A stretch of DNA of 64,000 bases from NCBI GenBank assembly GCA_002269645.1, contig NIVC01000385.1, forward strand, positions 124,001-188,000, written 5' to 3'. The notes beneath the pieces were generated by a model that was not told where the DNA came from, made no database searches, and saw nothing but the letters and a program-made list of their open reading frames with translations. The stretch comes from Macrostomum lignano. Its lineage: Eukaryota. Shown here piece by piece: positions 18,356-64,000 of the stretch. Position numbers and translations under genes: made by a program. The stretch's first letter is position 1; each line of letters opens with the position of its first letter.

Positions 18356-19011
18356 CTACAAATTTTGGGTGGTTGAGAATACTTAGACAGGTGATAGTTT
18401 CACGAGGCAGACATGAAAAAATACTGTATTTCACAAACTGACACATTGCTTCAACAATGTTTCAGAGCACACATGCATTGTATATACACATTTAGGGCTT
18501 TATTATAATGCATGACACATTGAGACAATATAGCTAATCCTTTTCCTTCTTTTCAGATAATATTATAAAGGTTAAAAATCAATTAGCATCGAGGCTTGAC
18601 AACCTTCGAGTGTACCAAAGATCAATTCACTTAAGCACTACGAGCTATTTTATATATAAACAGCTAGGTAATGCAATGGTTAGAATAGAGATTTCAAAAT
18701 CTTAGAAACTTTACTATTAAGTTAATATGGGTTATAATTCCTATTGGAGCAGCGGAAAATTCGAATCAATCTTAATTTTAAAGGAGTTCGATCTTGGCTT
18801 AGCTTAGAAAATTGCACCTATCATCTAGCATACAATTTTTCTTCAATTATATACACAATACATTTAGACAGTTAGACTAGAGTTAGACTTATAGACTTAT
18901 ATGTAAACTTATTAAAGTTTACAGAAGCATATGTAATCAATACAATAAGAGCCTAATCATGTAAGCTCTCAGACAGGCACTAATATAAAAATACGAGTAT
19001 ATAACGCTTAC

Positions 19012-38339: not shown

Positions 38340-41030
38340 TTAGAAGGGCAAAAAGGAAGATAAAATAGCATAGTGTTTACCTGCAATTATGTCTACAAAT
38401 ACTGGTGGATGGAGAAATTTGTGTACTGGATCAATAATATTAACTTGTGATGTTGGTTTACAATAAAAAGTAAAGTATGATGGCAAAAAAATGGAATTGT
38501 AATTTTTTGTTACCAAAAGCCACTTGCCCTTAATGCATATAATTTTAAAAAGTGATGATAGGGTTAGATCATAGCAATCATCAAAGTCTTGATGTTTACT
38601 TTGAAAAATAATCATTGACTTGTACTTAGTTGGAGCTTTAAACTCTAATGACCCTATTTTTAAACTACTTGCTACAATACAATCCTTAGGCATATCATTT
38701 ATACTAGGCAACTGCAAATAACTAGCAATGGTTTCGATTGTTTGAAAATCAAAAAGATTAACAAGTGATACTTGTTGTAAATTTGAAGCCAATGGAACAT
38801 CAAATTCAACAGTAGACATTGTAATAGCTTGATGCAGTTGAAACCTTTGTGCTGCTGTTGCACATACATTTTTAAAGCAACGTACTATAGGTATTATTTT
38901 TTTAAAGTACTGATGGATTGACTCAAATCTCATTGTCCATGCTACTTTCAATCCATTATACATAGGGATTAGGTCTGGATAATGCAACATATAATGGAGT
39001 TTACATTTTTTTGATAATTGATTGTTTGATACTTTGTATATTAGGTTATTATGTTCATTTATTAAGGTAGCAATATAGTCTGAATTGTGTTCTTCTTCAT
39101 CTAAAGTTGATAATAAAATGGCCAGAACTTCACAATGTATTAATAGAAGATTCATGATATCATACTTAATTGGATTATTACTGGAAAGAACATAAGGCCC
39201 AAAATATAGAGGCATTCGATGGATAATGTGAATCATATCTGCTGCACAGAATGGCAATCTATTATTGTTGATGTGTGCTGGCAAAAGAGAAGGCATTGAG
39301 ACAGGGAAAAGTTTGAAAAGCCTTTTGATATTATCAAAATTTAGGATTTTGTGCCTTAATAAGAATTTAATAGCAAGACAAGCAACGAAGTGTGATGTAC
39401 CTTCTAGTAAATCATGAAAAAAATCTGGGGGGAAAAAGTAAGGCATGGTAACATATCCAAGACCATTGAATGGACAGTTTTGCTTAATTCCAGTTTGAAT
39501 GCTAATGTCCCAGCTATCATCTCTACTTAAGTCATCATGCTTAGTTAGACAAAAATCAATGTCAGTAGCCTTTGCAATACAAAATCTACATGCTTGGCCT
39601 GATACAAAATTTGTCCCAAGTCCAACAAGTGAATTAATTGATAGGTTGTCACCAGTACATAAACATGCAATAACTGGAACATTTATTTTTTCCCCATTTA
39701 AAGCTTCAAATGTAATTCCATAGTCATACAGATTATTCAATTCTTCAATCAAAGGAGAATATAGCTCTTCAAGGTTGAGGATATTATCTTGAATAATTTT
39801 ATATTTTACTAAGCAAGCTAAAAAGAAACACTTTTCTTGAGATGCAATTTCCTTTGGCAGATTTAAAATTCGATAGTAAATTGCATAAATTTTATGCTTA
39901 CACCTAGCTTTACCAATTGGGTTTGCCACTTCAAATTCATCTGTATATAGTGCAAGATAAATAGCATCTTTAGGGTCATTTTCAATTAATGGTTTGATAT
40001 AATTTTCAAAGTATGGACTAGAAAAGAAAGGTGATTTTTCCTTTAATTCCCCAGTAAAAATCATAGATTGAAAATATTTATTTTGTAAAACTGAAGAAAT
40101 ATTGCTTTTGATTGGAATATAAACAATACTATTCCTATTAAATAATGGTACTTCAATAGGTTCAACAAATTGATAATGCCCTTTAATAAAACTTAACAAC
40201 TGTGAATCACTTTCTAATATTTCAAGGCAAGTATCAAAGAATGATTCTAATTGCAAGAAATCTTGGACCCCTTGGATGGTTTTATTTGGAATACCTTTTT
40301 CTTTCAGGAATTGACAAATGGTTGATAGATATAATATACTAAAGGAAGAAAAAATGCCTTTTACTTGTAAACTTAATGACCTTGCTGTACTATTTGGTAA
40401 GCTGAAATAATCTCTAGCTTGAAAATAAAACTTTGCCATGTTGCAACCACTGTTTGATTTTAACTTTTCTTTCAATTCCCATGCAGATGATTCTGGCCTG
40501 GCTAGTGCTAACATAGAAACAGGAGGCCTAACTAGGTTTGATAAATCTCTAGACCCTTCTTGGTTTTTAAATTCAGCATGTACAAGCTGGTTTTGTTCAA
40601 TGTCAATAGGCATATTTATTGTAGAAGATCCAGTCAGTAAGTGTTCATTCATATGCATATCATTGGCACTGGCTTGATTGCTAGGACTTATGTCTGTAAC
40701 ATCAAATTGAAATGGCTCAGTTAAGCTTTGACTTAGGATAGTATCACTGTGGAACCTAGAAATATGCTTGATAGTGGCTTCTTTCGAGGATGAAAATACA
40801 AAACAATTCTGTAATGGACACTGAAACTTCAGTTGAATTTCAGCTGACCTAGTGGACAAGAGAGGACAATAATGGCGATAATGCTTTAAAAACTGGGATA
40901 AAGAAGTGCTCTTACAACCACATTTACATGTGAACATGGACAAGGAGTTATGACTTGCCATCATAAAAAAAATGAAGCCAAAGTAAAGCTTAATAGCTTT
41001 GGAACTATACAAGTAAAATTCAGGAGCCAT
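38340..41030 (-). CDS. EnSpm/CACTA-type transposase with N-terminal C2H2-like zinc fingers (start probably the MMASH Met)
   Basis: CKCGC...HYRHYC and CPLQNC...HISRFH fingers; LYTDEFEVANPIG...KHKI, GDNLSIN, CRFC, PPDFFHDLLEG, CKLHYMLHYP, WTMRFESIHQYFK. Confidence 0.88.
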   Translation of the reverse strand: MAPEFYLYSSKAIKLYFGFIFFMMASHNSLSMFTCKCGCKSTSLSQFLKHYRHYCPLLSTRSAEIQLKFQCPLQNCFVFSSSKEATIKHISRFHSDTILSQSLTEPFQFDVTDISPSNQASANDMHMNEHLLTGSSTINMPIDIEQNQLVHAEFKNQEGSRDLSNLVRPPVSMLALARPESSAWELKEKLKSNSGCNMAKFYFQARDYFSLPNSTARSLSLQVKGIFSSFSILYLSTICQFLKEKGIPNKTIQGVQDFLQLESFFDTCLEILESDSQLLSFIKGHYQFVEPIEVPLFNRNSIVYIPIKSNISSVLQNKYFQSMIFTGELKEKSPFFSSPYFENYIKPLIENDPKDAIYLALYTDEFEVANPIGKARCKHKIYAIYYRILNLPKEIASQEKCFFLACLVKYKIIQDNILNLEELYSPLIEELNNLYDYGITFEALNGEKINVPVIACLCTGDNLSINSLVGLGTNFVSGQACRFCIAKATDIDFCLTKHDDLSRDDSWDISIQTGIKQNCPFNGLGYVTMPYFFPPDFFHDLLEGTSHFVACLAIKFLLRHKILNFDNIKRLFKLFPVSMPSLLPAHINNNRLPFCAADMIHIIHRMPLYFGPYVLSSNNPIKYDIMNLLLIHCEVLAILLSTLDEEEHNSDYIATLINEHNNLIYKVSNNQLSKKCKLHYMLHYPDLIPMYNGLKVAWTMRFESIHQYFKKIIPIVRCFKNVCATAAQRFQLHQAITMSTVEFDVPLASNLQQVSLVNLFDFQTIETIASYLQLPSINDMPKDCIVASSLKIGSLEFKAPTKYKSMIIFQSKHQDFDDCYDLTLSSLFKIICIKGKWLLVTKNYNSIFLPSYFTFYCKPTSQVNIIDPVHKFLHPPVFVDIIAGKHYAILSSFLPF

Positions 41031-47329: not shown

Positions 47330-47600
47330 GAGGGGGGTTGCGCAACGCAATTCGCACATTGGAACAGGCCGCCAAAGGCGGCCGCTCTAGGCATGAATCC
47401 TATCGAGCCTGTCTGGGACTTCGTGAAGCAAAGAGTTGGCAAGGGTGTCTGCAGAATGCTGAACAGGTTGCGACAGTCGGTTCTGAATGCCTGGCAGCAG
47501 CTGCCCCAAGAGTTAACCAACTGGCTGGTGATCAGGATGCTACGATGAGTGACAACACTTGCACTTTTGCATGCTCGTGGTTCCTACTCACGGTGATACT
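47330..47600 (+). pseudogene. Tc1-type (DD34E) transposase C-terminal relic
   Basis: Frame reads MNPIEPVWDFVKQRV...LRQSVLNAWQQLPQE...ARG, matching the Tc1 LNPIE..W..LK.RV...W..IP...ARG pattern; contains stops. Confidence 0.6.
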
Positions 47601-49094
47601 GAAACAAGCATTAAAGACATTGCTCAACTTTTGTGCCGCGTGACAGTGTCAGTTGAGAGGGAGGGGGGGGGCTTAGGTTGCTGCTGAGTAGCCAGTAGCG
47701 GCGCAGGGGGTGGGGGCTGCGGCCTCCAAGTGACCTGCACTCTCCCGTCCCTCCAAGGGGGTGACCGCAATAATATTCTTTAAGTATATGCCTTCTTGTG
47801 AGATTTTAGTGTAATGCATACTAAACATCCACCCCCGCCGCCATTGCATGCGTATAGTCTACGAGTATACTGTATTTTTCGAATAGCTACTACCTATTTC
47901 TCTGTAATTCTCTTTTATTCTGCATTAAATAAACCTTAAGGCTTTTACGTAGCTTAGGTAGCTCAACCGTTTGTCCAGCTACTACCTGTTTGCAACATGT
48001 ATTAAAATGCATACATTTTGCGGATGCATATATCAAGGCCGACCCTTGATCAGTCTGCCGAAATCATGCCCAAAGTTCCCCTGGAGAATATCGGCACCTA
48101 TCTTCCTATAATGAGTTTGCCTACCAGACAGCCTATACTAGTTGGGTCTGGGGCCCTGAGGGAAACTGAGGTAGACAAGCGACTCGCCCTTCCTATAATG
48201 TACTTAATGGCAGGATTCTGATGTAAGAACTGACACGGCGGTGAAAGTCAGGTCAGTGCATGTAGTGTATAGTACGAACTAGCTTATTAAATTGAGAGGC
48301 CTGCCACTTCATATAATAAGCATTACTGCACCAGAGTGTTTCCCTATTTGCCTATTCCTCATCTCTCGTCGTTGCCTAGGACACAAGTTCTAGAGCCTCT
48401 GAGTGCATGGGTGCGCACACACTGAAGAATGGGGGCAGCGGTGGGCCAGTCAACCTTTTTCCTTTTCATTCACTCAAGCATGATCGCTGCATCCGCCCAA
48501 GGCGGCTGGGAGAAGCAGAGAGAACTGCACTGTACTCTGCTCAGGCTTGAGGGTTGGAAAAGTGCGTTCATTTTCATTCTGCGGACTTCTGCGCACGAAT
48601 ACAGCATCCAATGCCATTGTTTCGGGGGTGTGGTTGCCATGGTTTGGGGCAGAGAATTTTTACTCTCTACCCCTTGCTCTCTAATGAATGAAGCATAGCA
48701 TCTGAGCTGTTGGGTATTTAGGTAGAATTTTAGTATAGTGGATGTGCAGCAACAGCCACTCTTTCAGGTTATTGCAAGGCCACACACCCACTGCAAAGGT
48801 TAGTTGCATACATAGTTAGGTAGCTCTTGCAAACTCAGCTCAAATATCAGAAAAAACAGTAAATTCTATTAACCTTGCGTACCATTCGTCAGCTAAAGCT
48901 TTCCTTTGCTCATAGGTAAGTGTTGCTTTTATTACATTTGTGTATGTAGAGATACGAATTGCTGGGGATACTAGGATACTACACTGAATTAAATAGTGAA
49001 TTAAGATAATAATAGCTTGGAACTCGTCAGACGCTTTTATGTAGAACAGGCGTCGGCAATTTTTTTTACATCATAACCAGCTACATGTAAAAGT

Positions 49095-49174
49095 GGAGAG
49101 GAGAGAGAATAGACGATGAGAAATGAGACAAGAGAGGAGAGGCGAGAGATGGGATGAGAGAAGAGAGAGTGGGA

Positions 49175-49219
<45 letters not shown>

Positions 49220-49329
49220 AGATAAGATGAGAGAAGAGGGAAGAGGAGGGGAAGGAGAGAGGGGAAAGAAGAGAAAGGAAAGAGGATAGGGGAGACGTGG
49301 CCCGCGGGACGGAGTTTTCCGACCCTTGA
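49095..49329 (+). mobile_element. Partial hAT MITE with an AG tract including (AG)18, related to 8722-9182
   Basis: 3' end GGCCCGCGGGACGGAGTTTTCCGACCCTTG; purine tract upstream; 5' TIR absent. Confidence 0.55.
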
Positions 49330-50136
49330 TAATATTGAATAGATTAAAATATAGGACGATTTCCAAGACATTATTTATCCAGTGCTTTATTCGGTAATAT
49401 TCAATATTATCGCGAAACTTGAACGGAGAATACAATAACATTACAATACAATACAATAACAATCTACAGTTTGTCACCTTGTTTGACTTCTACATACATG
49501 GGCTCCACAAGCCTAATGCTGGCGAGATAGCAAATCTAACTTGACAATTCAATGCTCAGTTTAGTTTAATACTTAATACAATACTTAATCTCCGCTGCTA
49601 CACACAGCCAAAACAAATAATAACAATGTACATTTATAATGTAGCCATTGTAGGTGCATATCTTAATGAAATCATTTTTACATATTCTGCAAAAAATCTT
49701 GAGGCGAATGCGAGCCAAATTGATTACTACCCACTGTGTGTAACAGCCATTAGTCAGTCATTCGCAAGCTAGCAGCTACATGTTCGTGAAGTGTGGCCAA
49801 AAATTCCACCCTTGTTAATTCTCGCTCAAAATTCTTTATATATCACAGACAGTCAATCTTGTCAAATCTAGCAGGCGATAAAGGAAAGCTTTAATAAAGT
49901 CACACGATTCTATAACTATTGTTTACACAAGATACGCTCGTACCAGCATTATAACAAGCATTAACATTTTCTCACTGCAACGAAACACACATTATGTTTT
50001 GAATAAAGCAGCATTAGAAGTCGACTCTTCTCAAAGATTAAAAAAATGAATTTAAAATACGCTCGTAATTATTCACACCAATTTTAGACGTAACAAGCTA
50101 AAGCAAAATTCCTAAATCGGCAGTAACACGAGAAGC

Positions 50137-51567
50137 ATGGTAAGTCATCGCCTAAGTAAGCATAAATCTTCAGAATGCAGCACCCGCGTTGCGACCAACT
50201 CAACCACTACTATTGAGCTTCGAGAGGCTGTACAAGATGCAGAAATGGAAGAAGACTCCTCGCGAAATGGGTTCAGCTGCATTCGTCGAAGCAACTGTGC
50301 ACTGAAGATCCCAGCAGATGCTCCAACGAGGACCGAAGCGTACAAGGCTTACATGAGTTCCCATCCGACTGCCAAGCTCATCGGAATCAACGGTGGATGG
50401 TACGACATTTCCAAATTCATCCCGCACCACCCAGGCGGCTCTGTGATTGCTCAGTTTGTTGGCAAAGACGCTACTCCCGTGTTCAAAGGGCTGCACACCA
50501 AGGATGTGCTCAAACACATGCGGCCTGTAGCCACCTACAGACTGAGCGAAGACGACCCTGCCGCTGAGGCGTTCGCAGAGCTGCACCAGTTCTTCATCAA
50601 GCAGGGCTTCTTTCAAACCAGTGCAGTGTGGTATGCCGGCAAGATGGCGTTTGCAGCCTCTTTGTTGGCTCTCACGTTGTTTCTGGTTGTGGGCTGCAGC
50701 TCTTGGTACTGGCACTGTCTGGCCAGCTGCAGCCTCGCTCTGTTTTGGCAGCAATGCGGATTCTTCATGCACGACTTCATGCACAGCCAAGGCTTCCACG
50801 AGCGCAAGATTGACAACTGGATCGGCCTCGCGTGTGGAACGCTCGGTGTGGGCGTCAACAGCTTCTGGTGGCAGGAAGAGCACTACGTCCACCACGCACT
50901 CACCAATACGGTCGACTATGAGAATGGGTTTTTCGACCCTCAGATGAAAGAGGAATCGTGGGCGCAAAACAAAAAGTTGTTTCCATTCTTCACAATGAAA
51001 CTGCAGCATAAGCTGATAAAAATCCAGCATTGGACATTCCTTCCTGCCTGCATAATACTTGGTCGAACTGCTATAATCATCACTGCATTCAAGAGTGAAA
51101 GAAGACCTATTGTGTGGCTGGCTCTGATTTTGCACATTATCTGGGTGAGCGTTCTCTTGTGCCAACTTCCAACATGGACTCAAGTTTTTGTAACTTACTC
51201 CTTGGCGTCAATGCTAGAAGGAATTCTCCATGTCCAGCTATTAGTGAGTCACTACTGTAAGCCTTTCTACGAGCGCAAAGAAGTCTGCGAGGAGACTAAC
51301 TGGTACCGAATGCAGGTTGAGTGCAACATCAACATAAAGAACCCCGTGTGGATGGACTGGTTTCATGGCGGGCTGAACTTTCACATCGAGCACCACCTGT
51401 TTCCGCTGATGCCAAGACACCGGTTCAGGGAAGCGAGCAAACATATAAAGGCTGTGTGCGCTCGACTCGGGATTGAGTACGACGAGTGTTACTGGACGAC
51501 TGCTCTGGTGAGGACCCTGCAACAGCTGAAGAATGCTGCGGTTGTCTTCTCCCTGGATCCGAGATGA
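50137..51567 (+). CDS. Cytochrome-b5-fused (front-end type) fatty acid/sphingolipid desaturase, copy 1, intronless, 476 aa
   Basis: HPGG heme motif, HDFMH, HYVHH, third box HIEHH (GGLNFHIEHHLFP); hydrophobic helices. Confidence 0.92.
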   Translation: MVSHRLSKHKSSECSTRVATNSTTTIELREAVQDAEMEEDSSRNGFSCIRRSNCALKIPADAPTRTEAYKAYMSSHPTAKLIGINGGWYDISKFIPHHPGGSVIAQFVGKDATPVFKGLHTKDVLKHMRPVATYRLSEDDPAAEAFAELHQFFIKQGFFQTSAVWYAGKMAFAASLLALTLFLVVGCSSWYWHCLASCSLALFWQQCGFFMHDFMHSQGFHERKIDNWIGLACGTLGVGVNSFWWQEEHYVHHALTNTVDYENGFFDPQMKEESWAQNKKLFPFFTMKLQHKLIKIQHWTFLPACIILGRTAIIITAFKSERRPIVWLALILHIIWVSVLLCQLPTWTQVFVTYSLASMLEGILHVQLLVSHYCKPFYERKEVCEETNWYRMQVECNINIKNPVWMDWFHGGLNFHIEHHLFPLMPRHRFREASKHIKAVCARLGIEYDECYWTTALVRTLQQLKNAAVVFSLDPR

Positions 51568-53389
51568 GAACGAAACGAGTTCTTATCGCGTACGGACCAA
51601 CTGACGTAGTTTTCGTAGTGTACGAGCGTATAATCGCTTCGAATAATTTTGTTTTTTGTACTGCTGAAAAGTAGCCGATGTTACGTACCAATCAGGATTG
51701 GTTGTAGAAATTTTATGGGTGGAGTTTTATGGATTTGGGACTCATTCTTAATAAATCAGGTGTAGCCAGAAGCTTAGAGCTTAGTCGAATGTGCTTCTCT
51801 GCCTCTGGAGCATGCGAGAAACGGCATATAAATGTACAGACTATTGTAGCGATAGCGTTACTTTTCAGCTTTCGACTCTAGGGGTTAGTTTATAATATTT
51901 GAAATGCAGCGGCCAAGGATCTAATTCTGACGTACAGTTTCTAGCGTGCGTTGATAGGGCAGATGCAAATTCTACTGCTTTTATTGTGCTTAATCAGTCT
52001 TCACCGAAAATTTACTCAAACTGACAATTATCTGGTTGAACTAAGCATTCCATTGTTGCCTAGTAGGGGCCTTGGCCAAGTTCTGTGCCTTTTCAAGTGA
52101 TATACGATTTGTAGGTTACCTCAACCTTTTTTAACTGAATCGGATTTTACTGGCTTTTTAAATCAAAACTAGAAATAGTTTTGTGTGTTTAAACGTGACA
52201 ACAAGTGATTAAAAGATGATTTTTATTGCTCCCTTTCAACTGCTTGACTGCTTACTTTTTCCTTAGCTTTTTCTAGAATTAATTGAGCTGCTATCTACGA
52301 GCGTATGGCATACTTTCCCTTGTGAGCGGACGAATATTGTTTTGTACTGCTTTGACGTTGATGTCTTTTGATTTGATCTATAAAATTTGACGAAAATATC
52401 TTTCAAAAAACTAGATTTAGATATCTTGTTAAATGCTTCATTCTGCCTGTGCTCGGACTCTATTTAATCCTTTTAGAGTGATCTACATGTATCATGCTTT
52501 TTGTCTTTTTTTAATTTTTATACTGTCATTTCTGATCTAGTACTTTATGACAACTTAAAATTTTGTTTGACTTATTGAATTTTTTCAGCCGCCAATCTCT
52601 ATTCGGTAAATAACATTGTCCGCTCTGTATTCGAGTTGAATTCTCTCTGGCATTGATTTTATTCATAGAAACAAGTTGGCAGATATAGCTCCAGATAAAA
52701 CACAATGAGTTTATTGTAAATATGTACCAACAAACAAATGACATGTCCGCACGTGAGGTAAAATAAACCAAGCTGCATGTAGTTCGTCGATCGTTCATCG
52801 CCAAACCTATCGTATATGGCGGGCTCGCGTTATCGAAATGCGGTGTTGAAATGTAGGAGTACGCTATTTAGTTAGATCTAAAATATTCTCTTTGCCGTAT
52901 GGCTACAACTTTGCCATATCCTATAGTTTTTTCTGCCAAGGCCCACGCTCCACCCCAGGTGATTACAGACGGGGCGCGCAGACACACAGCCCTGCTATAT
53001 GTATGCCAATAAACAGAGCATCGGAAAGGTGTTCAATAATAACATATCAATGCAGTATATCTGATTCGTATAGAATCTATAGAGCTCTATTTTCATGCTC
53101 TAATTATTGAGCAATAAATAATTCGTAATTAGCTACCTAAAATATATGACCACTTTTTGGAACTTGAAACGATATAGGACGAGTGATGGAAGAATCAGAT
53201 ATTCTTCGGGATAGTAACAATGTATCATATCGTCACACAGTAAAGTATTATTGTTCTAAATCTGAACGAATGGAGACATTGCTAATTCTATCACGTTTCT
53301 ATTGTCAACTTCAAAAAGAAGCTGCGTTATGTATCTTTTTGAAGTTGACTCTTAAATTAGATTCCTAAAGTTGAGCTCCTTTGGCCAAT

Positions 53390-54740
53390 GATTGCCAAAA
53401 GGTTCCATCGTTATATCTGGGGTCGTACGGCGCAAGTGCAAAGCGACCACAAGCCACGAATCGATCTGTAAGAAGGCTTTGCGTGACACTACTCCTCGAA
53501 TTCAGCGACTCCTTGCTTCAGTTGCAACCTTACGCTCGTATGACATCCGCGTGAAGTACACGCCCGACTAAGACCTTTACGTAGCCGACACTTTAAGTCG
53601 AGCTCACGGTGCAGCTGATCTTCTCACTATTCAGCTTGAGGCTGCGCTTCACGGCCAAGATTTTTTAGTGGAATGCTGCTTTAGTGGTGATCGAGAAATC
53701 TTGCAGGTTATAAAGGCTGCGACAGAAAATGCAACTTAGCGAGAGGTTGCAAACTGTAATCATGGAGGCTTGGCCAGAGCATCGGTCGAAGTTGGCAGAC
53801 GACGAATTTGAAGCCTTCTTTGGGATATCCGAAATAACCTGACGTTTGCCTCTGGTCTTCGATGCCGTATTTAGGACCGTATCTATGGTATGTCGGCTCC
53901 AAAATCGGAGCAATTAAAATCCTTCGTTTGAGGCACCCTAGCATTTTAAAAATGGACCTCAAGGCCAAGAACTATTTTCTACTGGCCAGGAATGTGGAAC
54001 AGCGTGAAGCAGGTGGTTAGTGAATGCGAATTCATGCCAGCAGGATATGATGACTCAGTCAAAAGTAACGTTGATGCCAAATTTTTCAACGGACCCATTT
54101 GAGTTCCCTGGTGGATCCTACTTTGTGTACGTTGACTCCTACAGTCGCTGGATGAGTGTCACGCGGATGAGACCAGCCCTAGCTTGGCTGTGGCGCATGT
54201 GATACGAGATCATTTAAAAAAATTGGAGTGCCAGAGAAGCTAGTCAGTGATGGAGGTCCGCAGTTTTCTGCTCTCGAGTTTCGACAAACAATGGCTGAGT
54301 TGAAGGTGGAGCGCACGTACCCGCAGTCGAACGGTAGAGCCAAGCGCTACGCATAGACAGTCAAAAACATGCTGAAAAAATGTCCCAAGATAGGCCAAAG
54401 TTTATAGTTGGCACTGCTTCACTACTGCAACACTCCGGTTGGCAGCGGCTTTCCAAGCCCGGCGGAGATGGCTTTCGGCCGTAAGCTTCGTTGTGACCTG
54501 CCAGCGAATTTCAAGGACCTGTAAACAATGGAAACTCGTCTTCACACCAGCATAGAGGCTTTTGTAAAACAGATAACCGCAGCTATATAATTGTGGAGCT
54601 CCAACCCTTGCGGAAACTAGCAGCTGGTGATCTGGTGTGGTTACAACGCGGTCGTCGCGAATGGGTGGTAGCTGAGATTGATAGCGAGTGTGAGAACTCT
54701 TCAGGGTCGTACTGGGTCAAACAGCTCAAAATACTCGTCA
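53390..54740 (+). mobile_element. Old degenerate Ty3/gypsy RNase H-integrase fragment
   Basis: Frame-broken motifs: RFHRYIWGR..VQSDHKP, LYVADTLSRA, YFYWPGM...V.ECE, VDSYSRW, SDGGPQF, YPQSNG, NTP...PSPAEMAFGRKLR. Confidence 0.75.
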
Positions 54741-55619
54741 ACAGTATAGTCCTATCAATAAAAAATATTCATCTAAAATTGCTGATTTTATTATGTCAAA
54801 ACAAACAAGAAAAAACGTTAAAAGAGACGAAACTGCAAACTGCAAACTATGCAAACCATTACGAAAATCGGCCTCCAACGAATTTTCCACGAAAGTTGAG
54901 TCTTGCGTCCTATATATACGTTACTTTAGTCGTCCTTGAGCCGGCCTTGGGCAGCGAGATGGGGCCTAGGCCGTATCGTGGCCGAGCTTATCAAGACTCC
55001 TGAGTACTACCAGGCGGCCTAAGCCTAAGTAAACCGATTTGCCATTGACTGTCACTTTATTTAACAGTTATTTTTGCGCTCACTTAAACTACCACTCGTA
55101 TTTTAAGCATCCAAATACTCAGCTTACTCAGCTACACACTAGTATACTATGCGTATTGTATATGAGATCATTCTGTGGTTATCTAATAACTCAGATTGCA
55201 GGACTTTCAGGAGTATTCTAGGTATCAGATATTCTGATACCAAATATGATTTTGTTCCTTAGTTCTTTTCTTTTCTTTTCTTTCGTTCAAAAAATTGCAT
55301 TATCATTCCTTCACTAGGGATGCAAGTTCGTAACCAAAGTTCCTTTCGTTTAGATCGTTTCAAACAGAAATCTTTCGAAGGGTGATGTTGTGTATTGCAT
55401 TCAATGACTACTTATAACTCTACTTAGAGTTGTTAAGTAGTCCTTGATTGCATTTTGTATCAGTTGTTTTGGTTTAACTGCAGGATCGAGAGCTCTAGCC
55501 CAATCAATCCAATATACTAAAATGCTTTATTCATGCGCACCGGCTTTAGGTTCTAGTGTAAAATGTAGAACCTACATTCTACACCGCATCGCTCGTCTAT
55601 TTAAAATATATTAACTTGT

Positions 55620-55838
55620 GGCTAAGTGGCTTTTTGAAGTGAATCACCCTCCAGCACTACAGTTTTTGTGAGTGGTTTGTCGAATTTCGACATGGCCTAC
55701 GGAGTCTGGATGATGACGAGTGCAGCGGCCGTCTCCCTATCAAGCAAGCGATGAGAATTTTGCTGCTATTCCGGCTATGATTGAGGATGATGCCAGGGTA
55801 ACTGTGTCTCAGATAGAGGCATAAGTATGCATCCCATA
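55620..55838 (+). mobile_element. Mariner transposon, 5' part (HTH region); 5' TIR not found
   Basis: EFRHG..SLDDDECSGR...ENFAAIPAMIEDDARVT; interrupted by the LTR element. Confidence 0.7.
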
Positions 55839-55848
55839 TGTTGTGTAG

Positions 55849-56901
55849 TTGGTTTGCAGATTTGTACATATGTACAGTGAGTGGAAGAGCCTGTTTGAAA
55901 ACTACTTAATGGCGGTGGGCTTCGACACTCTACCAGACGCGAGAAAGCGAGCCCTGCTTCTGCACTGCCTGGGTGCTGAAGGACAGCGGATCTTCGCAGC
56001 GATGCAGCCACCACGATCTCAGAATTCGGATGATGAACAGCCACCGCTGGGATTCGACGAAACCGTGAAGCTGCTAAAGGAGCAGTTTGGTGGCAAGACC
56101 AACGTGGTGGCGGAGCGCCACAGGTTTCGGCAGCGAGGGCAGCGACCCGGTGAGAAAATCACTGACTTTGTGGCAGCGCTGTACACGCTGGCCGGCTCGT
56201 GCGAGTTTGGCGGCATGATGGACGAGATGATTCGCGATCAGATCGTGGAGAAGGTCAGCGACAGGCGGATCAGAGAGCGCCTGCTCATCGAGGACGGCCT
56301 GACACTCAAGAAGGCGGTGACGCTGAGTCAGCAGTGGAAGACCAGCATCGCGGAAGCCAGCGCGATCGAGACTGGCGGCGCAGTTGCCATGGCAAGTCGA
56401 GGCGAGGCAGAGGTGAACAAGGTGCAACATCAGTTCGGAAAGTCCAGAGCTCAAGAACAGGCGACTGTCGGGCGAGAGTCCTGTCCGAACTGCGGAGGCG
56501 GCCACAACAGGCGAGCGCGATGTCCTGCTGAAGGCAAGTCCTGTTATGCCTGTGGCAAGCAGAACCATTTTGGCAGGGTGTGCAGGTCGCAGGGCACTAA
56601 GGTGGCCGAGGTCGGAGACGAGAGCAGCCGCGAGGTCTTCACCGTGCGTGGTACGGCCAGTCCCGACATCAGGTGCCGGCTGAAGGTCCAGGGCAGCTGG
56701 CTGAGCCTGCTGGTCGACTCGGGCGCGAAAGTGTCCATTCTATCGGAGAGGACCTACCGGAAGCTCGGGTCCATGGCGCCGCTGCAGCCATCCAGCAGGA
56801 AGCTCATCGCGTACAACGGCAAGGCTATCGACGTGCTGGGACAGCGGTGCTGTCGGTCAACTACTGCGGGCAGAGTGTGCCGCTCTTCTGCTTCACAGTA
56901 G
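55849..56901 (+). CDS. Gag (two zinc knuckles) plus aspartic protease, 5'-truncated, frameshifted near 56845
   Basis: LLHCLG, ERHRFRQRGQRPGE, CPNC...H..RC and CYACGKQNHFGRVC, LLVDSGAKVSIL. Confidence 0.8.
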   Translation: MVCRFVHMYSEWKSLFENYLMAVGFDTLPDARKRALLLHCLGAEGQRIFAAMQPPRSQNSDDEQPPLGFDETVKLLKEQFGGKTNVVAERHRFRQRGQRPGEKITDFVAALYTLAGSCEFGGMMDEMIRDQIVEKVSDRRIRERLLIEDGLTLKKAVTLSQQWKTSIAEASAIETGGAVAMASRGEAEVNKVQHQFGKSRAQEQATVGRESCPNCGGGHNRRARCPAEGKSCYACGKQNHFGRVCRSQGTKVAEVGDESSREVFTVRGTASPDIRCRLKVQGSWLSLLVDSGAKVSILSERTYRKLGSMAPLQPSSRKLIAYNGKAIDVLGQRCCRSTTAGRVCRSSASQ

Positions 56902-58727
56902 TGCAGAAGGGATCCGACATCATGGGCACCGATCTGATGCAGCCGCTCAGCTTCCAAGTGGTGGACCGGGACGGCGACCTGGTGGGCACCGTGGACAAGA
57001 CCAGGCAGCTGCAGGCTTGGCTTCCAGACCGCTTCGAGCAGCTGACGCGAGGACTCGGCCGGATTCGAGGGTTCGAGCACCGGCCCCGAGTGAACCCCGC
57101 AGTGCCTCCAGTGGCGCAGCCTCTCCGCCGGACGCCGCTCAGCCTCAAGGAAAAGGTCCAAGCTGAGATCGATCAGCTTCTAGCGGACGGGATCGTCGAG
57201 GAGATCCAGGCATCCGAGTGGATTTCGAATCTGGTGGTCGTCCCAAAGCCTGACGGTAAGATCCGAATCTGCAATGACCTCAGGTGCCCCAAAAAGGCAA
57301 TTGTGCCGGACAAGCAGCCTCTGCCGACATTCGAGGAGCTGACCACGGAGTTCAAGGGCTCGACGGTTTTCTCAAAACTAGATCTGAACTCATCGTATCT
57401 GCAGCTTGAGCTCGCCGAAGACAGACGCGATATGACGGCCTTCATCACGGAGAAAGGTCTCTATCGGTACAAGCGGGTTTGTTTCGGTCTCAACGGCGCT
57501 CCGGCAGCCTTCCAGAAGGTGCTGAGCAAGATTATGCACGGCTGCTCAGGAACGGTGCACTACATCGACGACATAGTCGTGCACGCTGCCAGTGAGGCTG
57601 AGCATCACGAGCGGCTCACTGCGGTGCTCGACAAGCTGCTGGCCCACGGCGTCACTCTGAACGCAGGCAAGTGCCAGTGGGCTGCTGAGTCTGTGCAGTT
57701 CCTGGGCTACATCGTCTCTGCAAGCGGCCTGCGACCGATGCAGTCAAACGTGGAAGCTATCGAGCAGGTGCCGGAGCCGAAGAGCGCTGAGGCGGTGGCG
57801 GCATTCCTTGGAATGGTGAAATTTTACGCCAACTTTTTTCAAAATGTGTCGGATGTCGCCGAGCCGCTGCTGAAGCTGCTGAGGAAAGACGTGCCCTGGG
57901 ACTGGTCCGCAGACTGCCAGAAGGCTTTCACAACGCTCAAGAAGATGGTGCTGGCGCCGACCTGTCTGAGGTTTTTTAGTCCGGATGAGAAGATCATCGT
58001 TGCCTGCGACAGCTCGGCGCACGCTCTGGGCGCCGTTCTGCTTCAAGAAGACGGCGCCGGCGTCCGGAGATCAGTCGCGTTTGCGTCCAGAACCCCATCA
58101 GCGACTGAGCGCAAGTACTTCGCGTCTGAAAGAGAGGCATTGGCATGCATCTTCGCCTGTGAGAGGTGGCACTATTTCCTGTTCGGCCGGAGATTCGAGC
58201 TGCACACGGACCATCAGGCGCTGACTACGTTGCTGACGGCTCAGGGCAGCGGCCACCGGCCATTGAGACTGCACCGGTGGGCCGACCGCCTGCTCGCGTA
58301 TGACTTCCAGGTCTGCCACGTTCCGGGGAAAAAGAACACCGTTGCGGACTTTTTGTCGCGACACGGCGCCCGCAACGACAGCGGCGAGGAGGACCCGGCG
58401 GAGCTCCAAGTGAACGCCGTCCTGCTGTCTGGCGCGCTGCAGATCGTGAGCCCAAGCGAACTGGCTGAGGCATCTCTACAGGACCCGGTGATCAGCCAGG
58501 CAATCGAGATGACGCTGGAGGGCTGGCCGAGTTCCATCAAGCAGTTTTGGCCGGAGCTGCAGCCGTTCTGGCGGATCAAGGAGCAGCTCACAGTCTGGAA
58601 CGAAGGCAAGTGCCTGGCGAATGGGTTAATCGCGGTGATCTCCGCGTCGTTGAGAGAGAAGACGCTGCAGCTGGCGCACTTTGGGCACCTCGGAGTGAGC
58701 AGAATGAAGCAGACTGGGTGCGCGTGA
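56847..58727 (+). CDS. Pol fragment: RT, RNase H and start of integrase (core deleted)
   Basis: WISNLVVVPKPDGKIRICNDLR, KLDLNSSYLQ, FGLNGAPAAFQ, YIDDIVV, ACDSSAHALGAVL, ELHTDHQAL, NTVADFLSR, HLGVSRMK. Confidence 0.85.
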   Translation: MLSVNYCGQSVPLFCFTVVQKGSDIMGTDLMQPLSFQVVDRDGDLVGTVDKTRQLQAWLPDRFEQLTRGLGRIRGFEHRPRVNPAVPPVAQPLRRTPLSLKEKVQAEIDQLLADGIVEEIQASEWISNLVVVPKPDGKIRICNDLRCPKKAIVPDKQPLPTFEELTTEFKGSTVFSKLDLNSSYLQLELAEDRRDMTAFITEKGLYRYKRVCFGLNGAPAAFQKVLSKIMHGCSGTVHYIDDIVVHAASEAEHHERLTAVLDKLLAHGVTLNAGKCQWAAESVQFLGYIVSASGLRPMQSNVEAIEQVPEPKSAEAVAAFLGMVKFYANFFQNVSDVAEPLLKLLRKDVPWDWSADCQKAFTTLKKMVLAPTCLRFFSPDEKIIVACDSSAHALGAVLLQEDGAGVRRSVAFASRTPSATERKYFASEREALACIFACERWHYFLFGRRFELHTDHQALTTLLTAQGSGHRPLRLHRWADRLLAYDFQVCHVPGKKNTVADFLSRHGARNDSGEEDPAELQVNAVLLSGALQIVSPSELAEASLQDPVISQAIEMTLEGWPSSIKQFWPELQPFWRIKEQLTVWNEGKCLANGLIAVISASLREKTLQLAHFGHLGVSRMKQTGCA

Positions 58728-59432
58728 GTTGGCCGTTCGCGCGTGACAAGCTGAGCAGCCGGCTGTCCGAGCCATTGGAGATCTCGAGAATCGCGAGCGC
58801 CACCACAGTGACCCTCAGTGACGGCTCTCGGTGGCACGTCGACAACTGCGTGCGGGTGCAGCGGCCAGCAGGAGCGCTACCGCAGTGGCCCGCGCCAGCC
58901 GCCACGACGGCTCCGACACCCGCGGCGGCGGCGGTAGCGGCGGCAGAGGCGGCCGAAGAGCTGCCGTCGCATCAACGAGCACCGACGGCGGTTCGTGCGA
59001 GTGCGAGGAGTCGGGCTCCGCCGCAGTGGTACGGGGATGTGGTGATTCACTGATTGAAATATCTGCAAAGGATTTTTGAATTGCAAGCCTTTGGTTTTTT
59101 AGTTTTCTATTTAAGGTTTTTTGCGATTGGGACTTAATGTCGAACTCTTTCAAATATTTTATTCCTAATGTTCATGTCTGTTTTATTGTTTTTAAATATG
59201 TAATCGATTTTCGAATATTTCGTCGACAAGGCAACTCGTTCGCGAGGGAGAGTGAATGTTGTGTAGTTGGTTTGCAGATATGTACATCTGTCATCTGCTA
59301 TGTACATTTGTTTGCCGATATTGATTTGACGCAGCTAAATAAATATCTAAGTATAAATATACTAGTCGAAGGCCAACGTGGTCTAAGTTCGTGTGTACCC
59401 CCAAAATCAGTCTGACTTTCTCGACACAACCA

Positions 59433-60226
59433 CCATCCTCAACCTCAACCTGAGCAAGATTTCTGCACGCTGGGTGCCTCATCACCCTGATGGAGAAACA
59501 AAGAAGGCTCGGGGTGGCTTCGTACAATGCCATGCTCGACAGATTCGATGATGACCGCTCAGACTCGGTCTGGGAACTCGTCAGTGGTGACGTATCCTGG
59601 ATCTGTAGTTTTGACCAGAGTCCAAGCAACAGTCGGCCCGGTGGACACCAGCTGGAAGCCCCACCATTGAAGCTGCAGCAAGAGCGCAGCGTGGCAAAGC
59701 AGATGCTGGCCAATTTTGTGATGAAAGCTGGTCATCTAGCGATAGTGCCACTTGTGCAGCAGCGCACAGCCACTGGCGACCGTTATACCAACTACTGCTT
59801 GCCAGAAGTGCTGAGTGCCCTCTCCATTTGCCGCCCAAGGACTTAGCTCGGGTGTGCTTCTTCATCACGACAACACCCCCGCCCACAAGTCCAGGCAAGT
59901 GGTCGAATTCCTGACTGGAGAACGCATTCAAGAGCTCGGCCATCCACCCTGCAGCCCAGATCTGGCCCCGTGCGACTTCTTCGTGTTTCCGAGATTCAAG
60001 CAGAAGATGTGTGGCAATTCATCGCCGGAAGCTGCAGTCGAGGCCTTCATCAAGCATGTCAAGGGGGTGCCAAGTTCGTAGTGGTCCAGCTGCTTCAATA
60101 GGTGATTTGAAGGTATGCAACGGTGCATAGATTCTTCTGCAGAGTACCTTGAAAAAATATGACTGTCAGTTGCTCTCTAACTATTTCAGTCTTTCACATC
60201 CGGAAAACTTATTGAATAACCCCTCG
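59433..60226 (+). mobile_element. Mariner transposon, 3' part (D34D catalytic domain and right TIR)
   Basis: KISARWVPH, SGDVSW, HHDNTPAH, SPDLAPCDF with 34 residues between the second and third D; TIR CCGGAAAACTTATTGAATAACCCCTCG followed by TA. Confidence 0.85.
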
Positions 60227-60713
60227 TATGTATAGAAGTATGGGCTCTCTTTGGAGCCAATTCCTTCAACGGAAAATTTCTGTGCCCATATTTCAGAGTG
60301 CGTACAAGGCAAAGTGGGGTACGTTCGCCCGCTTTTCTCCACGCGCTCGCAGCATGACTAATGCCCTAGTGGAATCCTCTCCAAGTAGATTTTGGTGTGG
60401 GCTGTCTGGTAAATCTATTTTTAGAACAGGCCATCAAACCATTGCTGTATGGTCCGAGCAAATATGAAGCGTAGTGCAGCATGCTACGTACAAGTGTGCA
60501 AGTACGAAGGTTCATATTATGGGGTGTTCAATCTGACCGTTCCGTATCTCGACCACTCATGTACGTATTCTAAAACCTCTATATATTCCTTAACTCTGAC
60601 TAGGACTCCATTTTGCTTTCGAATTTGAACTGTTAAAGAAAAAATACGTGACGAGCTTACCACTTGCATGAAGTTAACAAGATAAATTAAAACACCCTAA
60701 CTATCAAACAAGC

Positions 60714-62156
60714 ATGGTGAGTCATCGCCTAGGAAAGCATCAATCAGAATGCAACGCTAGCATTTCAGCGAAGGCCGCTACTTTTAAAATCCGTGAAACC
60801 AATAAGCATGAACTGGCAGCACAAGATTCTGAAACGGAAGAAGACTCCTCGCGAAATGGGTTCAGCTGCATTCGTCGAAGCAACTGTGCACTGAAGATCC
60901 CAGCAGATGCTCCAACGAGGACCGAAGCGTACAAGGCTTACATGAGTTCCCATCCGACTGCCAAGCTCATCGGAATCAACGGTGGATGGTACGACATTTC
61001 CAAATTCATCCCGCACCACCCAGGCGGCTCTGTGATTGCTCAGTTTGTTGGCAAAGACGCTACTCCCGTGTTCAAAGGGCTGCACACCAAGGATGTGCTC
61101 AAAAACATGCGGCCTGTAGCCACCTACAGACTGAGCGAAGCTGACCCTGCCGCTGAGGCGTTCGCAGAGCTGCACCAGTTCTTCATCAAGCAGGGCTTCT
61201 TTCAAACCAGTGCAGTGTGGTATGCCGGCAAGATGGCTTTTGCAGCCTCTTTGTTGGCTCTCACGTTGTTTCTGGTTGTGGGCTGCAGCTCTTGGTACTG
61301 GCACTGTCTGGCCAGCTGCAGCCTCGCTCTGTTTTGGCAGCAATGCGGATTCTTCATGCACGACTTCATGCACAGCCAAGGCTTCCACGAGCGCAAGATT
61401 GACAACTGGATCGGCCTCGTGTGTGGAACGCTCGGTGTGGGCGTCAACAGCTTCTGGTGGCAGGAAGAGCACTACGTCCACCACGCACTCACCAATACGG
61501 TCGACTATGAGAATGGGTTTTTCGATCCTCAGATGAAAGAGGAATCGTGGGCGCAAAACAAAAAGTTGTTCCCATTCTTCACAACGAGACTGCAGCGCGC
61601 GCTGATTGCTATTCAGCATTGGACGTTCCTTCCCATCTGCATCATTGTGGGAAGACCGTACATCGTTATAGCAGCAATTGTGAGTGAAAGAAGACCTATT
61701 GTGTGGCTGGCTCTGATTTTGCACATTATCTGGGTGAGTGTTCTCTTGTGCCAACTTCCAACATGGACTCAAGTGTTTGTAACTTACTCCTTGGCGTCAA
61801 TGCTAGAAGGAATTCTCCATGTCCAGCTATTGGTAAATCACTACTGCAAGCCTTTCTACGAACGTAAGGAGGTCTGCGAGGAGACCAACTGGTACCGAAT
61901 GCAGGTTGAGTGCAACATCAACATAAAGAACCCCGTGTGGATGGACTGGTTTCATGGCGGGCTGAACTTCCACATCGAGCACCACCTGTTTCCGCTGATG
62001 CCAAGACACCGGTTCAGGGAAGCGAGCAAACATATAAAGGCTGTGTGCGCTCGACTCGGGATTGAGTACGACGAGTGTTACTGGACGACTGCTCTGGTGA
62101 GGACCCTGCAACAGCTGAAGAATGCTGCGGTTGTCTTCTCCCTGGATCCGAGATGA
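60714..62156 (+). CDS. Cytochrome-b5-fused desaturase, copy 2, intronless, 480 aa
   Basis: Same motifs as copy 1 (HPGG, HDFMH, HYVHH, HIEHH). Confidence 0.92.
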   Translation: MVSHRLGKHQSECNASISAKAATFKIRETNKHELAAQDSETEEDSSRNGFSCIRRSNCALKIPADAPTRTEAYKAYMSSHPTAKLIGINGGWYDISKFIPHHPGGSVIAQFVGKDATPVFKGLHTKDVLKNMRPVATYRLSEADPAAEAFAELHQFFIKQGFFQTSAVWYAGKMAFAASLLALTLFLVVGCSSWYWHCLASCSLALFWQQCGFFMHDFMHSQGFHERKIDNWIGLVCGTLGVGVNSFWWQEEHYVHHALTNTVDYENGFFDPQMKEESWAQNKKLFPFFTTRLQRALIAIQHWTFLPICIIVGRPYIVIAAIVSERRPIVWLALILHIIWVSVLLCQLPTWTQVFVTYSLASMLEGILHVQLLVNHYCKPFYERKEVCEETNWYRMQVECNINIKNPVWMDWFHGGLNFHIEHHLFPLMPRHRFREASKHIKAVCARLGIEYDECYWTTALVRTLQQLKNAAVVFSLDPR

Positions 62157-63215
62157 GAACGAAAGCATGAGTGATTGTGTACTTAAGAATTTCTTAAAAT
62201 ATTTACCTCCTATTTTATCACTCAAATACTGCTGCAAATGTAAGGGTATCTACCGCGTGCAAGGGTATTTTTTAATTTTTTAACTGTGGGTAAGTGGCTG
62301 CTTTTAGCCTGAGGTTTACATAAACTAACAGTCTAACAGTCCAACAGCATGACAGCAGTAGTTTCAAGGCATTATCCATGAATGTTTCAAAATCAAACTC
62401 TTGGCTCTTCCACCTCTACCAATCAGAGCTAGGTAACACTTGATAGGCAGCTGAGGTACAGAAGCGACAGTTTGATTTCTGATGGACTTCACGCTAGCAA
62501 TTCGCAACAAGTTGCCATTGTGCGTCTCTGCCCGAATAAATCCAATAGATATGAGTAGCAAAGTGAATTTTCTCTTTAGTGGCTAATTTACCCCCATATT
62601 GACGACTATTCATTCATGACTAACCGTTGATATGTAAATTTGGTAATCTCCAGTTGAGTTCACCTCAAAGTACTCCTATATACATGCTTATTTTAAGTAC
62701 GCTCGTATATATTCACTTCTAGCAAAATAGCTCGTACGCTCTTTACTCGCAATTTTCTGGGTGCACAAAGAAAATGACTGATTTGAAAAAAAACAAAGGA
62801 AATTTAAATGCCATGGTGCAACAAATTATATATCAGCAAGCTTAAAAAACTCAATTGTGTCAGTTCGCTTTTTCTTAGCTATTTATGTTGTAATCAATTG
62901 TTATTTAAAAATATTTATTTGAACTTTTATTGACAGTACCATGATTTTTTTGTACAATCGAGCATCTGTTTCGCTCTTTTATCTAAAAATATCTTATTGA
63001 GGACTGAATATTTATGCTTTTTTAATGAGATAGGCTTAGTCTTTGATTTTCACGAATCCTGTTCGCGATGCCTCTCGTGATTCAAAATATAATTTGCCGA
63101 TAACCGGAAGGATCATTTCTGTATCCGCATGAGTACTGTGTACTGTACTCTAGAAGAAATGCTTTATTTAAGATTCTAAATATCTAATAGAACAGTTTTG
63201 TGCAGCTGCAAACCT

Positions 63216-63565
63216 ACCCACTGATCTCTGCTGGAGCATCACTACTCACAGGTTCCTTATCGAGTATCGCTACACACTGGTGCCTGATGGAGCATCGCTA
63301 CTCACTGATCCCTGGTGGAGCATCGCTACCCACTGATCCCTGGTGGAGCATCGCTACCCACAGGTTCCTTATCGAGTATCGCTACACACTGGTGCCTGAT
63401 GGAGCATCGCTACTCACTGATCCCTGGTGGAGCATCGCTACCCACTGATCCCTGGTGGAGCATCGCTACCCACTGATCCCTGCTGGAGCATCGCTACTCA
63501 CAGGTTCCTTATCGAGTATCGCTACACACTGGTGCCTGATGGAGCATCGCTACGCACTGGTCTGA
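63216..63565. repeat. 28-bp minisatellite (GAGCATCGCTACCCACTGATCCCTGGTG type) with higher-order structure
   Basis: Period 28; a variant pair recurs at ~63249, 63361 and 63501. Confidence 0.93.
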
Positions 63566-64000
63566 TAGAGTTTCGCTAACTTTTTCTGGAACTCAGCCAC
63601 ACCTTACCTGCTATTTAATCTAGTGTAACAATGTTTTTTAGCCCTCTTCCAAGATTTATTGATCAACCCAGCTCATAAACGCGATGAGCGGAACAGAAGT
63701 ACATGTAGTTCGAATTTTGAAATTTCGATGCCAGCTTAGCAGCAATTTCTTCCTACAGAAAGCAGAAATACGTTAATACTCGTACATGGATAACATGCCT
63801 AAATGCTCTGGTCTAAGCAATGCGACGTTATTAAAATTGTGATCTCAAATTTTCGTACTGCTGCGCTGCAGAAGAATAAATTTTAAATTTTCGTGCACAC
63901 TGTATTTGTCTAGCAGTGTACAGTCTAGTTAAAATATAGGTGAATGGGCTGGAAGGTTAGTCTAGGACGACTTTACACTCAAGATTTTTCTCAAAGCATG

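Follow-up and report, generated by a model that had tools for sequence, protein, structure and literature searches.

Two intronless genes for desaturases fused to cytochrome b5 lie in a stretch of the Macrostomum lignano genome, raising the question of whether this flatworm obtained them by horizontal transfer. The stretch (contig NIVC01000385.1, positions 124,001 to 188,000; 64,000 nucleotides, called the window below) had been described in an earlier note, which called the genes fungal/plant-type, likened them to Mortierella-type delta-6 enzymes, and took their lack of introns as a sign of horizontal acquisition. The horizontal transfer proposed there finds no support as a recent event with a fungal, plant or algal donor. 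From sequence comparisons we favor, with a probability of about 0.72, the explanation that the two genes are functional tandem paralogs belonging to an H-box family of desaturases that would be old in animals and vertically inherited, with a putative sphingoid-base substrate.

Two complete genes encode b5-fusion desaturases

The earlier note had placed two desaturase open reading frames (ORFs) in the window, and both were found where it had put them (copies A and B, encoding proteins MligA and MligB; Table 1). Each copy matches Cyt-b5 (PF00173, E ~1e-10) and FA_desaturase (PF00487, E ~3e-31) in Pfam, values far beyond chance. The heme-binding motif HPGG occupies amino acids (aa) 98-101 of copy A and 102-105 of copy B, and all of the motifs that had been quoted, LFWQQCGFFMHDFMHSQGF, FWWQEEHYVHH, GILHVQLLV(S/N)H and WMDWFHGGL, were located in both ORFs. 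Overlooked had been the third His box, which is HIEHH in both copies and thus begins with H, not Q. In an alignment numbered on copy B, residues H216, H220, H253, H256, H257, H423 and H424 are invariant and H420 is nearly so; two hydrophobic hairpins are also present in the proteins. The combination of a fused b5 domain with HPGG, eight histidines and two hairpins is the predicted architecture of an endoplasmic reticulum di-iron desaturase that carries its own cytochrome b5.

Modeling of copy B with AlphaFold2 from an alignment of 42 sequences gave a predicted local distance difference test score (pLDDT) of 87.7 and a predicted template modeling score (pTM) of 0.84, with disorder confined to residues 1-57. 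The variable N-terminal extension is the fastest-diverging part of the coding sequence (CDS). Both ORFs are uninterrupted and align end to end with orthologs; together with the confident full-length model, this establishes that the CDS are truly intronless, as had been claimed. Searching the PDB by sequence and by fold recovered no structure of a front-end desaturase, the only matches being cytochrome b5 domains, chains 8xqw_M and 8xks_K (from the Chlamydomonas Ycf2/Orf2971-FtsHi motor complexes), and AlkB. An NCBIfam scan yielded only sub-threshold matches, to bacterial DesA/DesB.

The desaturases belong to an H-box family distinct from FADS and Q-box enzymes

The third box starts with H (GGLNxHxEHH) in ~95 of the best 120 homologs, a set that comprises every named animal, diplonemids and a diatom subgroup, and distant homologs among the same 120 carry GGLQFQxEHH, one of them a Klebsormidium protein named "sphingobase delta-8 desaturase". 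When 1.84 billion representatives of 50% clusters were searched exhaustively, 264 matched at E<=1e-30; the best ~38 were all H-type where the motif was detectable, and at least 41 H-type clusters were among the best 150. As defined by sequence, the hallmarks of the family are the boxes HDxxH / HxxHH / HxxHH, the GGLNxHxEHH context, and a block of the form DPQMxExxWxQNKKLxPFF. Both Macrostomum copies combine the b5 fusion with HxxHH inside GGL(N/Q/H)xHxxHH, and both carry the signature block DPQMKEESWAQNKKLFPFF, which is present in the diatom delta-10 enzyme too and is absent from the Q-box delta-8 enzyme.

A QxxHH third box has been treated as diagnostic of front-end desaturases (PMC3877899, PMC6010785). 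Relative to front-end desaturases in the strict sense, the Macrostomum proteins have the b5 HPGG motif and the first and second His boxes but not QxxHH. Delta-8 sphingolipid desaturases (SLDs) and delta-6 acyl-lipid desaturases of the Q-box type, from plants, algae and fungi, resemble them in the b5 fusion, three His boxes, a WxDWFHGGL-like context, similar length, and ~30-32% identity. They differ in the third box (GGLQFQxEHH) and the second (WWKxxHNxHH), lack the DPQM...QNKKL block, and form a separate clade; the Macrostomum proteins do not cluster with the Klebsormidium and Genlisea SLDs. Metazoan FADS proteins, represented by the Patiria "acyl-CoA 6-desaturase-like" protein P0252, share the overall b5-desaturase architecture, but have boxes HDLGH / HYQHH / QIEHH, with FTGHLNFQIEHH, and constitute a different family. 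The Macrostomum proteins neither cluster with FADS1/2/3 nor show HDxGH / HFQHH-type / QIEHH boxes.

The only characterized H-box member that was identified is Q4G2T3 (DESAT_THAPS), the sphingolipid 10-desaturase of Thalassiosira pseudonana, which lies in the diatom subclade. Like the Macrostomum proteins, it has a b5 fusion with HPGG, an H-first third box (GGLNFHYSHH versus GGLNFHIEHH in Macrostomum), and the block DPQM(K/R)E..W.QNKKL.PFF, and it joins them in the same H-box clade at 96-100% bootstrap. Unlike them, it has HDAEHH rather than HDFMH as His box 1, and the diatom clade sits apart on a long branch. MligB is 33% identical to Q4G2T3 (236 bits), 32% to the Klebsormidium delta-8 enzyme (198 bits), and 23% to P0252 (96 bits), the last figure agreeing with the statement in the earlier note that the proteins are not of the vertebrate/FADS type.

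All trees were neighbor-joining trees, in which support was obtained by counting bipartitions and not by comparing rooted clades. The bipartition defining the H-box family received 100% bootstrap support with 110 sequences and 96% with 156 sequences, the latter set including starfish FADS and plant SLDs. The Macrostomum genes grouped with Q4G2T3 to the exclusion of the Q-box SLD/delta-6 enzymes and of FADS, and in the 110-sequence tree support was 100% for each of four clades, those of Macrostomum, tunicates, diplonemids and diatoms. The labels "fungal/plant-type" and "Mortierella-type delta-6" are contradicted by this placement away from the Q-box proteins. Nesting within ordinary metazoan front-end desaturases, an outcome against which the proposal of foreign origin had been set, was borne out in part: the proteins fall among metazoan orthologs, but these are not FADS. 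Motifs and trees together indicate that the H-box family is distinct both from animal FADS and from the plant, fungal and algal Q-box delta-8/delta-6 enzymes.

Copies A and B were also scored against hidden Markov models (HMMs) of subgroups built without Macrostomum. The highest score was with protostome Group 1, one of two animal paralog groups (~640 bits), followed by tunicates plus the acoel (545 bits), protostome Group 2 (520 bits), diplonemids (470 bits), a choanoflagellate-containing clade (425 bits), Q-box enzymes (285 bits), and the diatom delta-10 clade (270 bits). These scores make the affiliation with the animal orthologs robust and the link to the characterized enzyme a remote one.

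Distribution and gene structure argue against a recent transfer

Named animal members of the family come from Platyhelminthes, Brachiopoda, Annelida (Owenia, with both paralog groups, and Dimorphilus), Priapulida, Bryozoa, Syndermata (Seison), Tunicata (three genera: Styela, Ciona and Clavelina), and Acoela. This spread is a minimum, with many close homologs located on ENA, Logan or JGI contigs. Among the named members, homolog searches turned up none from a mollusc, echinoderm, cnidarian, arthropod, nematode or vertebrate. RefSeq lists predicted proteins of Lingula anatina (XP_013413396-8) and Priapulus caudatus, with motifs and length as in Macrostomum, as "sphingolipid 10-desaturase(-like)", an automatic naming that is explained by the presence of Q4G2T3 in the cluster of the diatom subgroup. 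The orthologs from Owenia, Watersipora, Styela, Ciona, Clavelina, Convolutriloba, Dimorphilus and Seison have no functional name, and an M. lignano protein has already been deposited as hypothetical protein BOX15_Mlig019763g1.

Groups 1 and 2 are both present in Priapulus, Lingula and Owenia, and the duplication that produced them thus predates the split between Ecdysozoa and Spiralia. Macrostomum appears to carry only Group 1 copies, arranged as a tandem cluster. On Owenia fusiformis sequence CAIIXF020000001.1, two Group 1 genes likewise lie in tandem on one strand, separated by ~3 kb; H-box genes have therefore undergone tandem duplication in another phylum as well.

A single exon encodes the Priapulus_1, Lingula_2, Watersipora and Dimorphilus orthologs and that on ENA contig P0003, and Owenia_1 consists of a tiny 5' exon plus one large exon; exact gene records were not found for Lingula_1 (P0004), Priapulus_2 (P0200), or the window protein. 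Intronless CDS in the protostome orthologs make this structure a trait of the family, not a peculiarity of Macrostomum. Styela has five introns and Convolutriloba two, and exact mapping of their junctions revealed no common intron position or phase. One candidate for an ancestral tunicate-acoel intron, near MligB aa 390, was rejected: the two introns are in phases 0 and 1 and ~10 residues apart, and that of the acoel is within an acoel-specific insertion. The assertion that all remaining host genes in the window have introns also proved incorrect, as the acyl-CoA dehydrogenase gene is a single 415-aa ORF; intronless host genes are therefore not unusual in the window.

These results bear directly on the proposal that Macrostomum or flatworms recently acquired a front-end desaturase gene without introns from a fungus, plant or alga, an idea that draws on the intronless CDS, the un-FADS-like proteins, their superficial motif likeness to delta-8/delta-6 enzymes, and the absence of the family from many animal phyla. 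The best matches, however, are animal proteins, with 45-57% identity between the Macrostomum proteins and their closest animal relatives, whereas proteins of diatoms, algae and plants reach 29-35%, and the subgroup HMMs place the animal groups far above all others. Intronless orthologs in five or more other phyla, two ancient paralog groups common to Ecdysozoa and Spiralia, and a third box unlike that of plant/fungal-type enzymes are further evidence against it. Codon usage is host-like: GC content at third codon positions (GC3) is 0.62 in the desaturases and 0.61-0.69 in the acyl-CoA dehydrogenase gene and the exons of a G protein-coupled receptor (GPCR) in the window. None of the usual signs of a horizontally acquired gene, that is, non-animal nearest relatives, absence from related animals, or atypical composition, was found, and the family occurs in at least eight animal phyla. 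A recent transfer is therefore very unlikely, and the lack of introns does not serve as a sign of one.

An older event has to be weighed differently. An intronless H-box gene could have passed from a marine protist into an early bilaterian or metazoan ancestor and then have descended vertically with many losses, or, in a variant that we weigh jointly with it, the passage could have been from animals to diplonemids. Diplonemids (P0036, P0046, P0058, P0060 and P0076) have H-box desaturases with 41-46% identity to the animal proteins, approximately equal to that of the tunicate proteins, and branch beside the animal sequences in the neighbor-joining tree; this likeness may reflect shared ancestry or transfer between protists and animals. 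Such an event would also agree with the intronless state of both protostome paralog groups, with the patchy animal distribution, and with the unshared tunicate and acoel introns, which fit later lineage-specific gains. Against it, a member from the marine choanoflagellate Diaphanoeca grandis is closer to the proteins of protostomes and tunicates, with 37-41% identity (35% for that of the acoel), than to diatom, plant and algal proteins (27-28%, the diatom enzyme at 28%), as vertical descent within Holozoa would lead one to expect. The trees do not resolve the deep nodes and thus point to no donor, and loss of introns by retroposition in the stem lineage could explain the same intron data. The intronless state may thus derive from ancient retroposition, from ancient transfer before the bilaterian radiation, or from independent intron gains only. 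We consider an ancient transfer in either direction unlikely, though less so than a recent one, and prefer the explanation that the Macrostomum genes were inherited vertically within an old animal family and would not be a recent foreign acquisition.

The copies form a tandem cluster that is present at a second M. lignano locus

Copies A and B are 91% identical in protein sequence and 95.6% identical in DNA sequence over 1351 nt. Nucleotide similarity begins 4 nt before the ATG and ends 8 nt past the stop codon, and the flanks are unalignable. The differences are strongly clustered, falling in the first ~60 codons and in one block of ~30 codons, and the other ~350 codons are almost identical. 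The divergent block (38 aa) contains 34 nt changes and 11 aa differences, with a near-identical core around it. The copy B block has derived residues at family-conserved positions (K299A, G/A316Y and F322I), and S375N is a further derived residue outside the block. The distinct membrane-helix segment may reflect different substrate handling by the two copies.

A second M. lignano contig, NIVC01001967.1 (217 kb; locus L001), is collinear with window positions 47378-64000 at 94-98% identity and contains, in order, a 476-aa gene, a 480-aa-type gene, a third desaturase copy and an SH2 tyrosine kinase gene. The cluster therefore has at least three desaturases; in the collinear order, the third, an intact ORF with an alternative N-terminus, would be ~2 kb past the 3' end of the window. 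The second L001 copy has a frameshift near aa 400 that may be real or an assembly indel, and the publicly available model P0001 chimerically joins L001 copies 2 and 3. The top database match is an M. lignano protein with 97% identity that is encoded on L001.

Both A-type and B-type blocks are retained on L001. Ratios of nonsynonymous to synonymous substitution rates (dN/dS) over the core were 0.17 for copy A versus copy B, 0.08 for window copy A versus L001 copy 1, and 0.06 for window copy B versus L001 copy 3. The pattern points to an old tandem duplication in which the coding cores were presumably homogenized by gene conversion under purifying selection, the copies evolving in concert, whereas the N-terminal tail and the 38-aa membrane-helix block remained specific to each copy. 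Copy B was considered as a retrogene of copy A, and this was rejected: the homology is bounded by the CDS edges, no remnant of a poly(A) tract is present, and the orthologs lack introns in any case.

The second locus also bears on whether the genes could derive from assembly contamination, for example from diatom food or another co-sequenced eukaryote. M. lignano cultures are fed diatoms, and the characterized relative is a diatom enzyme. Identity to the diatom clade is only ~33-35%, however, GC3 is host-like, the genes are embedded between flatworm sequences in the window, and a host-type retroelement interrupts the spacer between them. The same gene order, next to the SH2 tyrosine kinase gene, in two independent M. 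lignano sequences excludes contamination, to which we attach a negligible probability.

A sphingoid base is the most likely substrate

In the proposed mechanism, electrons would pass from NADH-cytochrome b5 reductase to the heme of the fused b5 domain and then to a di-iron centre that the eight histidines hold in place; this centre would abstract two hydrogens and thereby place a double bond in a lipid chain. The proposed substrate, by analogy with the only characterized family member, is a sphingoid long-chain base. Q4G2T3 desaturates sphingoid bases at delta-10, an activity (on a d18:2(4,8) base) known only for the diatom enzyme (Michaelson et al. 2013, cited in PMC4440215), and an H-type third box is thus catalytically competent. 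In mammals, FADS3 introduces a delta-14Z double bond into sphingoid bases (PMC11765627), which shows that b5-fusion desaturases do act on ceramide bases in animals. Bases of the 4,8,10-triene and 9-methyl-triene types are reported from starfish sperm, squid nerve, scallop, ascidian and anemone (PMC2444003, PMC11765627, PMC4440215), and a literature search found no animal enzyme assigned to triene sphingoid bases. The earlier suggestion that the genes are candidates for making unusual unsaturated sphingoid bases remains plausible in that their nearest characterized relative is a long-chain-base desaturase. By this analogy we regard sphingoid-base desaturation as the most likely function, at roughly even odds, and we infer that the double bond would be at a delta-8/delta-10-type position of the long-chain base of ceramide or glycosyl-ceramide. 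Given the 33% identity, the long separate diatom branch and the difference in box 1, delta-10 regiospecificity cannot be assumed for the Macrostomum enzymes.

The two copies could instead be fatty-acyl (acyl-CoA or acyl-lipid) front-end desaturases that help to make polyunsaturated fatty acids. They have the same architecture as delta-4/5/6/8 fatty-acid desaturases, function is not readable from sequence in this superfamily (PMC5037126), the single characterized H-box member identified is distant, and the classic triene-base taxa seem to be without the family. Weighing the other way, the canonical front-end Q is replaced by H, the only functional anchor of the family acts on sphingolipid bases (PMC4440215), and tunicates have the H-box family, an ascidian having been reported to contain triene bases (PMC4440215). 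On this evidence we hold a fatty-acyl substrate to be rather improbable, though a serious competitor, and retain the sphingoid base as the favored substrate.

Several observations count against our explanation as a whole. Neither regiospecificity nor head-group preference is predictable from sequence in this superfamily (PMC5037126), which leaves room for a fatty-acyl substrate. The characterized enzyme is distant, and the diatom-clade HMM performs no better than the Q-box HMM. Molluscs and echinoderms, the groups best known for 4,8,10-trienes (PMC2444003), are absent among the named H-box matches, so that the correlation between gene and lipid is incomplete. The nested nodes outward from Macrostomum had support of only 6-38% in the 156-sequence tree; with the branching order inside the family so poorly supported, monophyly of the animal sequences is not demonstrated. 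Finally, the presumed gene conversion is read from the pattern of differences.

A broader proposal, possible but in our view more doubtful than probable, is that the H-box family is the missing animal system for the additional double bonds in the 4,8-diene and 4,8,10-triene bases of marine invertebrates. Groups 1 and 2 would act at different positions, the family would have been overlooked through QxxHH filters and would possibly go back to an intronless gene acquired or retroposed before the bilaterians arose, and the membrane-helix block that stayed distinct in Macrostomum despite gene conversion would signal that copies A and B differ in their substrate or in the position they desaturate.

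Other features of the window

The spacer between the two desaturase genes contains a Ty3/gypsy-like retroelement whose coding parts are listed in Table 1. A 36-bp direct repeat is found at 55838-55873 and 59256-59291. No direct repeats of at least 40 bp that could represent long terminal repeats (LTRs) were detected around the element, which is therefore an LTR-less internal fragment. Since the collinear L001 lacks it, the fragment is an insertion specific to a haplotype or homeolog; it has no relation to the desaturases.

Elsewhere in the window, an ORF with a tnp2-family transposase domain and an adjoining ORF without a Pfam match probably form a DNA transposon, with a composition unlike that of the host genes. 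A reverse-transcriptase fragment is the remnant of another retroelement. The minisatellite near the 3' end is present in L001 too, and a GA-rich microsatellite gives rise to a spurious SLSLSL ORF on the minus strand.

Table 1. Coordinates of the desaturase genes and other features (window positions unless L001 is given)
Feature	Position	Strand	Basis or remarks
Desaturase copy A, complete single-exon CDS, 476 aa	50137-51567	+	ORF, Pfam
Copy A, variable N-terminal extension, ~58 aa	50137-50310	+	Predicted disordered
Copy A, cytochrome b5 domain	50377-50520	+	Pfam; HPGG at 50428-50439
Copy A, FA_desaturase domain	50704-51486	+	HDFMH 50770-50784, HYVHH 50881-50895, HIEHH 51382-51396
Copy A, family-signature block	50935-50991	+
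Copy A, divergent block, aa 286-323	50992-51105	+	First helix region of second membrane hairpin
Desaturase copy B, complete single-exon CDS, 480 aa	60714-62156	+	ORF, Pfam, AlphaFold
Copy B, variable N-terminal extension, ~58 aa	60714-60890	+	Predicted disordered
Copy B, cytochrome b5 domain	60966-61109	+	Pfam; HPGG at 61017-61028
Copy B, FA_desaturase domain	61293-62075	+	HDFMH 61359-61373, HYVHH 61470-61484, HIEHH 61971-61985
Copy B, family-signature block	61524-61580	+
Copy B, divergent block, aa 290-327	61581-61694	+
Third desaturase copy	L001 15245-16561		Intact ORF, alternative N-terminus MDNGDSGG...
Ty3/gypsy-like retroelement internal fragment, 3.6 kb	55838-59437	+	In spacer; GC ~0.60
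Retroelement gag and aspartyl protease	55849-56901		Two zinc knuckles in gag
Retroelement reverse transcriptase-RNase H	56673-58727		ORF ends at integrase start
Rhodopsin-family GPCR (7tm_1)	9373-10521 + 11722-12333	-	At least 2 exons, intron ~1.2 kb
Reverse-transcriptase fragment	14243-14959	-	RVT_1
Acyl-CoA dehydrogenase, full-length 415-aa single ORF	17199-18446	-	N, middle and C domains
560-aa ORF adjoining the tnp2 ORF	36421-38103	-	No Pfam match
896-aa ORF with tnp2-family transposase domain	38340-41030	-	GC 0.32, GC3 0.25
GA-rich microsatellite	49096-49293
28-bp minisatellite	63214-63562		12.5 copies, 112-bp higher-order period

Discussion

A survey published in 2018 required QxxHH and described b5-type sphingolipid desaturases as "yet to be identified in metazoan taxa" (PMC6010785), and our literature search found nothing relevant on Macrostomum desaturases or on an animal H-box or sphingolipid delta-8/10 desaturase. 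Motif filters that demand QxxHH discard the whole H-box family, which is a practical blind spot. The locus also offers a caution for the interpretation of genomes, in that neither the absence of introns nor a "non-animal look" signaled horizontal transfer here. Should the sphingoid-base activity prove true, these two would be the first b5-fused desaturases of long-chain bases in animals that do not belong to the FADS3 lineage. RNA interference is routine in M. lignano, a tractable model, and the genes would then open a genetic approach to the unusual sphingolipids, dienes and trienes, that marine invertebrates contain.

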